A DNA stretch of 64,000 nucleotides from Calcarisporiella thermophila CBS 279.70 (lineage: Eukaryota > Fungi > Calcarisporiellomycota): NCBI RefSeq assembly GCF_041956535.1, contig NW_027192196.1, positions 861,823-925,822 on the forward strand, read 5' to 3'. The position numbers and the translations under genes were made by a program. Shown in pieces: positions 6,814 through 26,164 of this stretch (positions are counted from its first letter, which is position 1; the number at the start of each line of letters is the position of its first letter). The notes beneath the pieces are model-generated. The model was given only the letters and a program-made list of their open reading frames with translations. It did not search any database and was not told the origin of the DNA.

Positions 6814-8353
6814 TCATTTCTGGAAATAAGCGGTAATTTTGGAGGATCCCGTCTTTTTCTGGGCCTTCGACTTGAGGTCAATCTTGGCGGGCGAGGGTGG
6901 CGTTTTTAAAGCGGTAGCATCTTCTTCCTTGGACGGCATCAGCTTCGGCTCCTTGCTCCGCTTGTCTAGCTCAATGTTGCCGTCCTGCTCGAGGGATCTT
7001 TTTACCCCAACGCTGTCTTCGGTCTCTTTTTCGTCCTTCTCTTCAACCTTGACTTTGACCTTGACCTCCTCTTCTTTAGGGGTGGACGCTTTGGTGGACT
7101 TGTCTGGTTTGCCAAAAAAGTTTGCAATTGATTTTGAACTGCTCAAGGGCTGGATAAAAGCTGGGGAGTTGTTGCGCACGTTTCCGACCTCTTTCGTGAC
7201 CGGATAGCTAAATAAAAAGACGTCAAGCAAGGATTCTCCTACCCTGCAACCAGTACTCAGGTTACCATTCCAATTCCCCCTCATAGGGTCGTAGCACACT
7301 GGCCAACTCAGGCGACCAAGGTTCGTTTGGATCCAACCACTTGAAAAGGGCCTCGGAGCCATTCTCTAAGATAACGGGCATACGGTCGTGCAGAAAAGAG
7401 AGAAACTCCGACGAGTTTGTGGTGATGATGGTGTAGGTGAAAAGCGACTTGTCTTTAAGATCTGTGCGTTGGTAACAAATTCAGTATTGGAAAGAGGCGA
7501 GGAAGGGGAGACATTTATAGGAACCTTCAGGATGCGCCTCATCATAGAGACCTGCTAATAGCATGACCTTCTGGTCGGCTCGACGGGTATAATGGGGGAC
7601 TTTGCTCTCCTTTGGAGTTTTCGGTTTTAGCCATTCATAAAATCTTTGACATTGGAAATAGGCAACCATATCAACTACAAACGAAAAGTGCTGGGCAAAA
7701 TTCTTGCTTTACCCTTGGGCCACAATTACGCATCGCTTCTTACTTTTGAGTGAGTTGAACATTGGCTTGCCAGAAGTTAAAGAGTCATCACGGGCGTTAA
7801 TGGTTTTCAAAGTGGTCTATATTGGTACGAATAGAGAAGAAGTCAGCTATCTTTCTCGTACTGCTGAGGAAAAATGAAAGTGGGACCTGATAATCTGGCA
7901 TTTTTTTGCTCCAGCTGGGAACGAGCCCCCACCGCTGTGATATTAAGTATAGATAAATCGATGAATGTCGACGACAGTTTTGGAATAATAAGTTGCATTA
8001 CCATGGAATGTATCACATAATTCCCTTCTGTTTTACGAACGACGGGCTGATAATGCGTCGGCGCCACATTATAACTGGAAAAAAGAATTATGATCACAAT
8101 TAATCAAGCAAACAAGGAGGCTTGGAAATAGAGGATCAATGGTCATATTCTCTTACGAGGGACGATAGAGCTCCTGATTAACCCAATTTTGAGTCTCTAG
8201 TCTCGCGTCGGCTACCTGGTGGTGAACCTCTTCGGGAGTCTAATGGAATAGAAAGTTATCCCCTGATCCTCAAGATTCAGGAAAGAATGCCTGCAGAAAC
8301 AAGCAAAATGTTTGAGGCTATATTACGTAGGCACAAACCGTTCGGCCGCACAT
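6814..8353 (-). CDS. HMCES: SRAP-domain abasic-site processing protein (HMCES/YedK family)
   Basis: Spliced N-terminus MCGRTVCAY/TPEEVH carries the catalytic Cys2. Also YNVAP, RWGLVPSW, INARDD, KKRCVIVAQG/FYEW, LAGLYD, YTIITT, LHDRMPVIL, YPVTKEVGNVRNNSP, and a C-terminal PIP-like KITAYF. Confidence 0.93.
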
Positions 8354-8660
8354 TATGCACTCATTGGAGGGATGAGACGAGAACAAGGTCGAGATTTTGG
8401 AATGACAAAAAGTGAGAGAGCCAGTGGCCAAAAATTAAACAAAGCAGTCCCGAATCTGCGCGATTCATTAATGTGTCGCGTTAAATTCTTTGCACATATT
8501 TGTTCCATAAACGCGTACTTGATACAAAATAATTCTATTCCATATTCCTACCCTATAGTAAACGACGAAAGACGTGGTGAAATTATGCAAAGAATAACGA
8601 CTCTTCGTCAAGGTATATTCCTTTCCATGAAATTGGGTTCAAGGGATTTTTACGCGTTTT
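8354..8660. promoter_or_regulatory. Bidirectional HMCES/GCNA promoter (plus first GCNA intron) with MCB-like boxes
   Basis: About 231 bp separate the divergent ATGs. ACGCGA on the minus strand at 8476-8481, ACGCGT at 8511-8516, and ACGCGT at 8652-8657 in intron 1. Confidence 0.55.
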
Positions 8661-10600
8661 CACCTTGTTTCCTTTTCAACGATAACTAATTACAATATTT
8701 TGTAGAGCGCGTCTCCATTAAAGCCACTATATCCAAGGAATCCGATGACCTCCCCGATCTGGATGCCCTTCTCCAACGTCTAAACCTAAATGAGCCTCCT
8801 TCCAAAGATACCGAGTCCTCTAAACCAGCCAAAATCCATAGCGAGAATAAAGTCGCTCGTAGAGAGGAAGACTCAAGAGATCCATATGAGCCCAACAGAC
8901 AGCAGGCATTCACACCAAGTGGACGCTCTGTTCGTATCAGGAGGCATAGGCTTATTATTGAGAGCGACTCGGAGGATGAAAACGAAAATGACGAGAACAC
9001 TACTGAATTGGACGGTAGGTAGAGATGAATATAGTACTCAATTCTTCAACTATATCCAAATTGATATCGCCTTTTTATTCAAAAAAGCACAACCAAAATT
9101 GTCTCTGACGGAACGGTTGTTAAATGAAAAACCCCAGGGCAAAGACACCGATGATAGCCCCGAGTCCACTGACGGTGCTGGATTCTTGGTGTTGTAAGTA
9201 CAAGTGACCACGAATTATTTTACTAGGAAGCATGTTATATTAATAGAAATTCTCCCCGCAGCGACGACGGCCTCTCGAAGAATGTGTTCTCGCTCTCACC
9301 TACTGAAAAGTCCTCCAATTCTCCAAAAGCTTCCCCATCCACCCCCTCTACCGATGACGACAGTGACGATCCCTTCACTGTCCCGGATAAGTCACCCGTG
9401 GCTCGAACCCCCCGCACTCCCTTTCGAGATATTCAATCCAAGCTTCTGGTTACTCCTTCCAAGACCCCGGCTGCCAAAAGGGCTTTCCGAAATAAACGAG
9501 AGCAAATGGCTCGGGATTTTTTCAGAGAGTTGAATGAAGAAGTGTTTTCGGACAAATTGCCCGAGGATCTAGAGATAGGCTGGAGCGCTGGGCTAAATAC
9601 CACAGCCGGAAGGGCTTTCCTTAAGAGGTGCATTCATAAACCTACAATTAGGCCCCCAAAGAAATTGAACTTAAGTTCAACATGAATAGGGAGTACAAGA
9701 GAGATTCGTGGAAGCATTCGGCGAGAATAGAGTTGAGCTCCAAAGTGGTCGACGATGAGGGTAAGAGCTCTTTAGCTAGCCACACCCTACCGGACAATAA
9801 TAACGCAAAGATTTTCTCAGCCAAGCTTAGGACGACTCTGGCCCACGAGTTATGCCATGTGGCAGCGTGGATCGTGAATGGCGTTAGCAAGCCGCCGCAC
9901 GGTCCTGTGTTCAAATATTGGTATGGGGGGAGGGGCAAACGTTTATCTAACCAGCTTATCTCGAACCCCAAAACTAATCCATCTTGATTTCTTTACATTC
10001 AGGGCAACACGAGTTATGACCGCATACCCAAATTTAGAAATCAACACTTGCCATAATTACGACATTGATTATAAGTATCGGTGGGAGTGCGTGAGCTGTG
10101 GCAAGATATATGGAAGACACTCCAAATCAATCGATACCAGCATGCACGGGTGTGGGGTCTGTCACGGGTATGGAAAGAGAAAGAAAAAAAAGCCATTTTC
10201 TTTCACATTCGTTTTCATATGAGAATAACGAGCCATTGTGATATTCAGGAAATTGCGATTCATGGAGCGCCTGAAGAAGGACGGCACCCCCTACAAGGCG
10301 CGGCAGCCCAACGCTTTCCAGCAGTACATGAAGGACCACCTGCGCCGCATCAAGCAAGAAAATCCCGGCAAAACGCATGCGGAGGTGATGCGCCTGCTCT
10401 CCGAAGAGTATCGCACATCGAGCGCCAACAACCCGAGGTCGCGAGCGGCCATGACGCCGAACCCGAGCAGAAAGGGCTCAGCGCTTGCGGCCGGAATGAC
10501 CCCTTTTGCAGACCGGATCGTCACAGGGCGGCTGGAGAGAGAGGGTGGAGAGCATGCAGAGGATTCGCTGGTGAGGGCGGTTGGGGAGTTAAAGATTTAA
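8585..10600 (+). CDS. GCNA: GCNA/ACRC-like protein: acidic IDR + SprT metalloprotease + Zn ribbon + HMG-box-like domain
   Basis: Acidic low-complexity N-terminus, then WSAGLNTTAGRA, RIELSSKVVDD, LRTTLAHELCHVAAW (HExxH), PHGPVFKYW, CHNYDIDYKYRWECVSC...GRHSKSID...CGVC, and PNAFQQYMKDHLRRIKQENPGKTHAEVMRLLS. The exact start codon is uncertain. Confidence 0.85.
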
Positions 10601-25935: not shown

Positions 25936-26164
25936 ACGCGAGCCCACCATCGACGCGTTTTTTTGCTCCTTTACGTGACTCTGCTACGACTCACGGTATT
26001 CAAGGAAACCTAACCTATGACTTGAGAACCCTAACCTAATTGCAGCCTCGAATGAGGTGTTTTCGCCGCTCTACATTAATATCTGAGTGGAGTTTATCGC
26101 TGTGCACCGTTTCACATTTTCACCCGTGGCTTCAAGTATTGGACACAAATCCAAACGCGAAAAA
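25936..26164. promoter_or_regulatory. MCB/SCB-like boxes upstream of MMS22
   Basis: ACGCGA at 25936-25941, ACGCGT at 25953-25958 and ACGCGAAAAA at 26155-26164. Confidence 0.5.

Follow-up and report, generated by a model that had tools for sequence, protein, structure and literature searches.

A divergent HMCES–GCNA gene pair in the fungus Calcarisporiella thermophila, most likely a lineage-specific chance adjacency

The window considered here, a stretch of 64,000 nucleotides from the genome of Calcarisporiella thermophila, a thermophilic member of the Mucoromycota, contains two genes transcribed divergently from a short spacer. One encodes an SRAP/HMCES protein and the other a predicted protease of the GCNA/ACRC family (Table 1). 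The start codons, initially annotated as lying about 231 bp apart, were found to be separated by exactly this distance. Pseudogene status was ruled out for both genes, as both frames are intact. The adjacency itself is a fact of this locus, not a statistical pattern.

Table 1. Genes, exons, and candidate promoter elements of the divergent pair (positions in the window)
Feature	Position	Strand	Remarks
SRAP/HMCES ortholog	6814..8353	minus	8 exons, 347 aa, intact; hand-built model
SRAP/HMCES exons	8353-8327, 8239-8157, 8074-8002, 7934-7887, 7816-7713, 7643-7525, 7461-7266, 7207-6814	minus	stop included
Spacer between start codons	8354..8584		231 bp
MCB-like box AACGCGA	8476..8482	minus	TCGCGTT on plus
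Perfect MCB/MluI box ACGCGT	8511..8516		69 bp upstream of GCNA ATG, 158 bp upstream of HMCES ATG
GCNA/ACRC-family gene	8585..10600	plus	8 exons, 498 aa, intact; model = P0001
GCNA exons	8585-8612, 8706-9014, 9088-9193, 9262-9627, 9690-9760, 9821-9920, 10003-10167, 10249-10600	plus	stop included
Second ACGCGT	8652..8657		within GCNA intron 1

The SRAP/HMCES gene model contains seven introns of 58–87 nt, all GT-AG, and its product was searched exon by exon. The predicted protein begins with MCGR, which places Cys2 right after the initiator Met, and carries INAR, GFYEW, and HDRMP further on; the SRAP domain is followed by a charged disordered tail of ~110 aa. Translation of the stretch upstream of the start (8398-8354) contained no in-frame ATG. 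Exons 3, 5, 6, and 7 gave colinear matches to the Pfam SRAP family (PF02586, best E 1.3e-15), covering profile positions 33–57, 74–104, 106–139, and 144–201, respectively, with exons 5, 6, and 7 scoring 30.2, 32.9, and 58.0 bits against a gathering cut-off of 27.1. The exons were also colinear with Escherichia coli YedK, with MCGR aligned to the MCGR of YedK, and INAR, FYEW, and HDRMP aligned to its INAR, FEW, and HDRRP. The active-site residues are N75, E105, and H160 in YedK, and E127 and H210 in human HMCES. Among solved structures, exon 7 matched human HMCES best (6OE7/5KO9, E 1.9e-08), its HDRMP lining up with HHRMP, and the short exons 5 and 6, each searched alone, matched none. A six-frame PF02586 search (92.1 bits) revealed this gene to be the sole SRAP locus in the 28.2-Mb genome. 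The Pfam matches and the YedK alignment agree with the earlier description of an intact SRAP gene with Cys2 in MCGR, Glu in FYEW, and His in HDRMP, and the gene is, judging from its sequence, an HMCES ortholog. By homology, the N-terminal Cys2 of the protein is predicted to link it covalently, as a thiazolidine, to abasic sites of ssDNA.

The neighboring GCNA gene has GT-AG introns of 60–93 nt, and its hand-built 498-aa product was identical to the C. thermophila database protein VTP21DRAFT_10089 (P0001), which is currently annotated only as “uncharacterized protein”. The product begins with a disordered, mildly acidic region (residues ~1–224), continues through a SprT domain and a zinc ribbon to a two-helix HMG box, and ends in a short tail. 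SprT-like PF10263 matched exons 4 and 6 (E 2.4e-08), and the domain contains HELCH, followed 13 residues downstream by the His of HGP. Downstream of the protease domain, the C2C2 zinc ribbon (CVSC...CGVC) matched Zn_ribbon_SprT (PF17283, 4.6e-07; 30.2 bits, cut-off 28.1), and the HMG box matched HMG_box (PF00505, E 7.2e-07, 30.0 bits, profile positions 3–43 of 69) as well as YABBY (PF04690, E 8.2e-06). Residues 1–224 comprise 42 D+E, 35 K+R, 67 S+T+P, and 43 hydrophobic residues. Exons 2 and 3, encoding the bulk of this disordered region, had no Pfam matches, and screening it with a strict regular expression for the canonical four-residue core of a SUMO-interaction motif (SIM) gave no match, the sole lookalike being RLIIESDSEDENEND, in which LII is followed by an acidic/Ser run.

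Homologs of the product carry the names germ cell nuclear acidic protein, acidic repeat-containing protein, and S. pombe C19G7.04-type HMG box protein, and the top Atlas cluster was “Germ cell nuclear acidic peptidase” (score 0.94, TM 0.85). When solved structures were searched with the protein sequence, the sole match was an HMG-box chain, and no chain of SprT or GCNA type was recovered. The matches to PF10263, PF17283, and PF00505, together with the identity to the database protein, bear out the intact gene with a disordered region, SprT protease (HELCH), zinc ribbon, and HMG box that had been proposed. The gene is, on the strength of its predicted product, a GCNA/ACRC ortholog, belonging to a family that acts on DNA-protein crosslinks. 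Assignment as a SPRTN ortholog was ruled out, as the genome has a separate gene with SPRTN_ZBD.

The core promoters of the two genes, along with their 5′ UTRs, must fit into the 231 bp between the start codons, and this spacer necessarily acts as a bidirectional promoter. The spacer contains two MCB-like boxes (Table 1). ACGCGT occurs at 15 sites in the window, compared with 7.5 expected, and at least two MCB-like cores are present in 4.4% of 231-bp windows. In the same genome, the PCNA promoter contains four MCB-like motifs in 270 bp, and the thymidylate synthase promoter contains two copies of AACGCGA within 50 bp upstream of the ATG, the same form as the spacer box at 8476..8482; an ATP-cone search of the genome for RNR1 found nothing. 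Since the spacer has MCB-like boxes like those of the PCNA and thymidylate synthase promoters, shared G1/S expression is plausible, and the two boxes suggest that expression of the pair probably falls around S phase, like that of many replication and repair genes.

Alternatively, the two genes could be regulated independently from separable core promoters, with GCNA serving mainly in the sexual cycle or meiosis, as in S. pombe, and HMCES in vegetative S phase. The S. pombe member of the family, SPBC19G7.04, is upregulated 17-fold in meiosis, and GCNA is enriched in the germline or sexual cycle across eukaryotes (Carmell et al. 2016, PMC5098910; the supplements of that paper do not mention Mucoromycota genera). 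The MCB doublet, moreover, is only modestly unusual and lies closer to the GCNA ATG. However, so short a distance between the ATGs forces the two transcription start regions to lie almost side by side, and the MCB boxes are located in the interval that the genes share. Divergent gene pairs with nearly abutting start regions are often co-expressed. Independent regulation of the two genes appears unlikely.

The survey of the pairing started from GCNA and covered 11 further lineages, represented by 12 genomes or contigs that carry this gene, with 3.5–10 kb of flank on each side. The loci were those of Basidiobolus meristosporus (L008), Synchytrium endobioticum (two assemblies), Allomyces javanicus, Schizosaccharomyces japonicus, Monosiga brevicollis, Atractiella rhizophila, Fusarium culmorum, Meredithblackwellia eburnea, an ascomycete-like contig (L017, seen twice), Bifiguratus adelaidae, and Spizellomyces punctatus. 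No annotated SRAP gene was present within 3.5–10 kb of GCNA in any of the 11 lineages, and tblastn with the SRAP exon peptides, one by one, against all surveyed GCNA loci gave nothing at E < 0.1; in the positive control, the C. thermophila locus was matched by all eight exons. B. adelaidae, the only other Mucoromycota match for GCNA, has no SRAP gene beside it.

Other neighbors of GCNA recur among these loci. FKS1 glucan synthase adjoins GCNA in S. japonicus, Fusarium, and L017, and a homologous MAS20/SET gene (tblastx 9e-62) adjoins it in Bifiguratus and Spizellomyces. The MAS20/SET gene is absent from the C. thermophila window, and a MAS20 family search of the C. thermophila genome found only TOM20 on contig 18. 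The best non-self GCNA match was 53–56% identical, the nearest genome compared belonging to another subphylum or order. Clusters of the nearest GCNA representatives contained distant organisms only, and an exon-4 query for exon-sized fragments of close relatives gave no matches. Among the public genomes found, the linkage was absent in all 11 lineages, B. adelaidae included, which counts against the proposed module. With none of these lineages showing the pairing, we interpret it as a probable local accident in a compact genome, not a dedicated two-gene unit.

The biochemistry that the initial annotation had called established is correct (PMC10505908): HMCES crosslinks via Cys2, SprT-family proteases act on DNA-protein crosslinks, and SPRTN, a member of this family, is the dominant protease for HMCES crosslinks in Xenopus extracts. 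In C. thermophila, the SPRTN ortholog is a separate gene on another contig (SPRTN_ZBD 3.4e-25), and a Wss1/WLM gene is present elsewhere in the genome. The SPRTN-HMCES relationship in vertebrates was reportedly addressed by Semlow in 2022 and by Yaneva in 2023. Given this relationship, it is an established principle that HMCES adducts are removed by proteolysis.

It could be supposed that the shared promoter was selected to couple HMCES to a dedicated GCNA protease clearing its adducts, as a lineage-specific unit that is perhaps favored in a thermophile. The two intact genes have all their catalytic motifs and share a spacer with two MCB-like boxes, and degradation of HMCES crosslinks by a SprT-family protease has a precedent in SPRTN. 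C. thermophila is listed among thermophilic fungi (PMC11393059), and we infer that more depurination in a thermophile, and hence a higher load of abasic sites, could favor tight coupling. Nevertheless, the SRAP-GCNA adjacency is missing in all the other lineages surveyed, one Mucoromycota member included, and SPRTN and Wss1 are better-established candidate proteases in this genome. None of the papers retrieved for GCNA and HMCES together, as judged by their listing and by passages of PMC10505908, describes an action of GCNA on HMCES adducts, and a survey of SRAP gene contexts (PMC3765255) describes no prokaryotic SRAP-SprT neighborhood. Selection for such coupling is quite improbable. Co-transcription of HMCES and GCNA from one MCB-type bidirectional promoter, with GCNA dedicated to HMCES-abasic-site adducts, either alone or alongside SPRTN, is highly improbable, and a role for GCNA, rather than the SPRTN of this genome, as the HMCES-crosslink protease is not supported, as nothing points to it. 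For the proposed “make and remove” unit, the gene identities and the biochemistry were borne out; the conserved module was not, as the genes were linked in 0 of 11 lineages and SPRTN and Wss1 are present.

The flanking intergenic gaps of the gene pair are about 160 bp and 300–500 bp, as read from the list of open reading frames, and because the neighborhood is compact throughout, a 231-bp gap is ordinary here. Taking ~10,000 genes, a figure based on the locus tag number 10089, and three proteases that act on crosslinks, we estimated the chance of SRAP having a crosslink protease as an immediate neighbor at ~6 in 10,000 per genome, so that roughly one case would be expected among a thousand or more sequenced eukaryotic lineages. 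Set against a chance origin are this low nominal probability (~6e-4) and the single pathway logic shared by the two proteins, and real co-regulation would be consistent with the MCB doublet.

Taken together, we consider it probable that the pair consists of two distinct genome-maintenance genes, each in single copy, brought next to each other by genome compactness and lineage-specific rearrangement, with no indication of selection for adjacency. A rearrangement specific to this lineage, in a tightly packed genome, would have placed SRAP/HMCES and GCNA together. The adjacency most likely joins two real genes in a lineage-specific manner and by chance.

The gain is two well-formed members for known families, and the “uncharacterized protein” label of VTP21DRAFT_10089 can be corrected to GCNA family. 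A dedicated GCNA, if real, would mean a lineage-specific, hard-wired “make and remove” arrangement, and an unrecognized GCNA substrate in all eukaryotes. The sole wider value lies in the hypothesis that GCNA, besides SPRTN, can process HMCES adducts, which is testable in any model organism, independent of the C. thermophila locus. C. thermophila proteins, such as Hsp104, have been used before in structural work. Given this precedent and the lack of a GCNA or SprT match in the structure search, the compact GCNA and the HMCES of this fungus could suit biochemistry.

Compared with known systems, the C. thermophila HMCES resembles HMCES and YedK in its Cys2 after Met, INAR, FYEW (Glu), and HDRMP (His), and in its colinearity with YedK. 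A disordered tail at the C-terminus is a further feature in common with eukaryotic HMCES, and in C. thermophila it includes the PIP-like motifs SIANFF and, at its extreme end, KITAYF; unlike in known members, these motifs lack the canonical Gln, and the tail is very Lys/Glu-rich. The GCNA protein shares with GCNA/ACRC the four-part defining architecture, with a disordered acidic N-terminus, an HExxH SprT domain, a C2C2 ribbon, and an HMG box also matching YABBY; named GCNA proteins are 38–41% identical to it over the structured half. Its 498 aa make it a short member of the family. The spacer resembles the bidirectional promoters of compact fungal genomes and the yeast MBF/MCB G1/S regulon in being a short shared 5′ region with ACGCG boxes, but it contains two boxes only, a statistically unstriking number, and MCB function is unproven in Mucoromycota. 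Finally, as in the vertebrate SPRTN-HMCES system (Donsbach 2023, PMC10505908), a SprT-family protease and an SRAP crosslinker occur in one organism; there, by contrast, SPRTN, assisted by FANCJ, is the protease and its gene is not linked to that of HMCES, whereas the neighbor of HMCES in C. thermophila is the paralogous GCNA.

The initial annotation had read a head-to-head SRAP (HMCES) gene and GCNA-type SprT protease gene in Calcarisporiella thermophila as a candidate module that makes and removes DNA-protein crosslinks. The two divergent genes together span 6814-10600, and hand-built models were obtained for both (see table). The SRAP product begins with MCGR, and exons 3, 5, 6, and 7 matched Pfam SRAP (PF02586) in order (profile positions 33-57, 74-104, 106-139, and 144-201), with exons 5, 6, and 7 each exceeding the gathering score alone. 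Exon-by-exon comparison with E. coli YedK was colinear: both proteins contain MCGR, YNVAP, WG..P.W, INAR, HDR.P, and a C-terminal VGNV...IQP, whereas the Glu motif reads FYEW in C. thermophila and FEW in YedK. The top solved-structure match of exon 7 was the SRAP domain of human HMCES (6OE7/5KO9; E 1.9e-08), whose HHRMP aligns with HDRMP. The eight-exon model, the Pfam matches, and the colinearity with YedK confirm an intact gene with Cys2, FYEW, and HDRMP, as first described. A six-frame search of the 28.2-Mb assembly found this SRAP locus only.

C-terminal to the SRAP domain lies a Lys/Glu/Ser-rich tail of ~110 residues with two PIP-like motifs, SIANFF and, at the extreme C-terminus, KITAYF, both without the canonical Gln. 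The tail (6814-7140, minus strand) also carries a VKVE sumoylation-type site within a KVKVKVEE run. An upstream reading frame of three codons (ATGAGTGCATAA; 8353-8364, minus strand) has a stop codon whose last base is the A of the HMCES ATG (TAATG overlap), and could damp or couple HMCES translation if the 5' UTR extends that far.

The protease gene model was validated by its product, which is identical letter for letter to the database protein P0001 ("uncharacterized protein VTP21DRAFT_10089"). Its exons matched SprT-like (PF10263), Zn_ribbon_SprT (PF17283), HMG_box (PF00505), and secondarily YABBY, preceded by 224 residues of disordered, mildly acidic composition without a domain; the intact disordered region-SprT(HELCH)-Zn ribbon-HMG architecture noted initially is thus upheld. 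HGP, the expected third zinc ligand of SprT proteases, lies 13 residues downstream of HELCH. The structured half of P0001 retrieved 104 proteins. Some of them, found in bird, coelacanth, ctenophore, and moths, carry the name germ cell nuclear acidic protein or acidic repeat-containing protein and are 38-41% identical across 95% of the region; others are Schizosaccharomyces "HMG box protein" of the C19G7.04 type, and SPBC19G7.04 is presumably YGM4_SCHPO. YGM4_SCHPO is the S. pombe GCNA given by Carmell et al. (PMC5098910), and all four parts of the architecture by which these authors define GCNA, among them the two-helix, YABBY-related HMG box, were found in P0001. The top ESM Atlas entry was "Germ cell nuclear acidic peptidase" (score 0.94, structural TM 0.85).

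Assignment of this gene as the SPRTN ortholog was rejected, a separate SprT-like locus with a Spartan zinc-binding domain being present on contig 5. With a Wss1/WLM gene on contig 13, three crosslink-protease families therefore coexist in C. thermophila.

Coordinates of the genes, promoter boxes, and GCNA neighborhoods (plain numbers, window positions; L, individual loci; G000, C. thermophila genome with contigs C5 and C13)
Feature	Position	Strand	Details
SRAP/HMCES gene	8353 -> 6814	minus	8 exons, 7 GT-AG introns of 58-87 nt, 347 aa
GCNA-family gene	8585 -> 10600	plus	8 exons, GT-AG introns of 60-93 nt, 498 aa
ACGCGT	8511-8516		spacer
AACGCGA	8476-8482	minus	spacer
CGCG	8459		spacer
ACGCGT			intron 1 of GCNA gene
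GCNA-FKS1 adjacency	L012:8001-14424		Schizosaccharomyces japonicus
GCNA-FKS1 adjacency	L015:1-10117		Fusarium culmorum
GCNA-FKS1 adjacency	L017:1-10022		ascomycete-like contig
GCNA-MAS20/SET pair	L022:1754-8498		divergent; Bifiguratus adelaidae (Mucoromycota)
GCNA-MAS20/SET pair	L023:10001-16512		convergent; Spizellomyces punctatus (Chytridiomycota)
SPRTN ortholog	G000:C5:286820-290035 (L003)		SprT-like; SPRTN_ZBD PF22934 at 3.4e-25; UBZ-like C-terminus
Wss1/WLM gene	G000:C13:251852-252543 (L005-L007)		

The nearest non-self GCNA relatives in the collections shared 53-56% identity (Basidiobolus first, then Monosiga and green algae), and searching at exon level for unannotated fragments from close relatives gave no hits; genomic context was therefore compared across distant lineages. 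The loci were from Basidiobolus meristosporus, Synchytrium endobioticum (two assemblies), Allomyces javanicus, S. japonicus, Monosiga brevicollis, Atractiella rhizophila, F. culmorum, Meredithblackwellia eburnea, an ascomycete-like contig (encountered twice), B. adelaidae, and S. punctatus. An annotated SRAP gene within 3.5-10 kb on either side of GCNA was found in none of these 11 lineages, B. adelaidae, the sole other Mucoromycota member recovered with GCNA, included. Because annotation may overlook genes, the eight SRAP exon peptides were searched separately by tblastn against every compared locus, giving nothing below E 0.1, with all eight matching the C. thermophila locus as positive control.

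Other GCNA neighbors recur. The glucan synthase gene FKS1/bgs1 adjoins GCNA in S. japonicus, F. culmorum, and the ascomycete-like contig, which looks like an old ascomycete microsynteny without evident functional logic; downstream Mog1 and CRAL_TRIO genes are common to the latter two. In B. adelaidae and S. punctatus, the immediate neighbor is a homologous MAS20/SET-domain gene (tblastx 9e-62; SET match weak), which is absent from the 64-kb C. thermophila window and may represent an ancestral fungal linkage. Since SRAP is found beside GCNA nowhere else in the comparison and other neighbors recur, the Calcarisporiella arrangement is derived and lineage-specific.

The B. adelaidae model BZG36_04941 (890 aa; L022:5203-8498) fuses a GCNA-type SprT protease to TFIIF-beta domains, and is probably two adjacent genes joined by annotation. 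Among ~250 matches, GCNA groups comprised chytrids, Blastocladiomycota, Basidiobolus, Schizosaccharomyces, Pucciniomycotina, and Sordariomycetes, with Calcarisporiella and Bifiguratus the only Mucoromycota; most Mucoromycota may have lost GCNA, unless the searches overlooked it.

The two start codons lie exactly 231 bp apart (8354-8584), in agreement with the ~231 bp first estimated, and by its geometry, with room for nothing else, the spacer is predicted to be a bidirectional promoter. It carries MluI-type (MCB) cores, as do the PCNA gene (four ACGCG cores in the 270 bp preceding the ATG; L019:1235-1410) and the thymidylate synthase gene (a pair of AACGCGA boxes 13 bp apart, located 35-50 bp before the ATG; L020, reverse strand). 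These two promoters suggest that an MBF/MCB-type G1/S regulon operates in this early-diverging fungus, to which HMCES and GCNA plausibly both belong. Taken alone, the spacer signal is weak: at least two MCB-like cores occur in 4.4% of 231-bp windows, and the window holds eight doublets of ACGCG-type cores, some within coding sequence. One doublet (TTACGCGAGCCCACCATCGACGCGTTTTT; 25937-25954) possibly lies in the MMS22 promoter. Among the other protease genes, SPRTN has a single candidate ACGCG-type core upstream of it and Wss1 lacks any in 3.3 kb. Independent regulation of the neighbors, with GCNA active in the sexual cycle like its S. pombe counterpart, is unlikely given the cores flanked by both genes.

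Co-expression would follow from membership in a general S-phase regulon alone, with no special relationship needed between HMCES and GCNA. Assuming ~10,000 genes (from locus tag number 10089), a single SRAP gene, and three crosslink proteases, we estimate the chance of SRAP having such a protease as immediate neighbor at about 6e-4 per genome, which is small alone, but not against at least a thousand independently rearranged eukaryotic genomes with both families, and the coincidence is weaker still against the much larger set of neighbors, replication and repair genes included, whose adjacency would seem just as meaningful. The short spacing lends no weight to functional pairing, because the gaps flanking the pair are similarly small (about 160 bp and 300-500 bp from the ORF list, with approximate gene models). 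The flanking genes encode aminopeptidase P and carnitine acetyltransferase. A single adjacency that is not conserved says little about function, and we regard a dedicated HMCES-GCNA module, coupled through the shared promoter as initially proposed, as very improbable. The best explanation, which we hold with reasonable confidence, is that two ordinary, intact repair genes became adjacent through lineage-specific accident and are probably both expressed in S phase from an MCB-bearing bidirectional promoter.

A linked eukaryotic SRAP-GCNA pair is not known to have been described before, which makes the adjacency a new observation. In the portions of the literature available, mostly titles and abstract openings, no report of GCNA acting on HMCES adducts was apparent among items mentioning both. 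In the accessible sections of PMC10505908, GCNA figures only in a list of additional proteases apparently targeting crosslinks; SPRTN is the main protease of HMCES adducts in Xenopus extracts, and the adducts are cleaved in vitro by human SPRTN, with FANCJ, and are also lost through the proteasome and self-reversal. A survey of prokaryotic SRAP contexts makes no mention of SprT; in its accessible sections the only metallopeptidase association is DUF955, tied to the ImuB-C domain, and the links it reports are to translesion polymerases, Ku/ligase, and helicases (PMC3765255).
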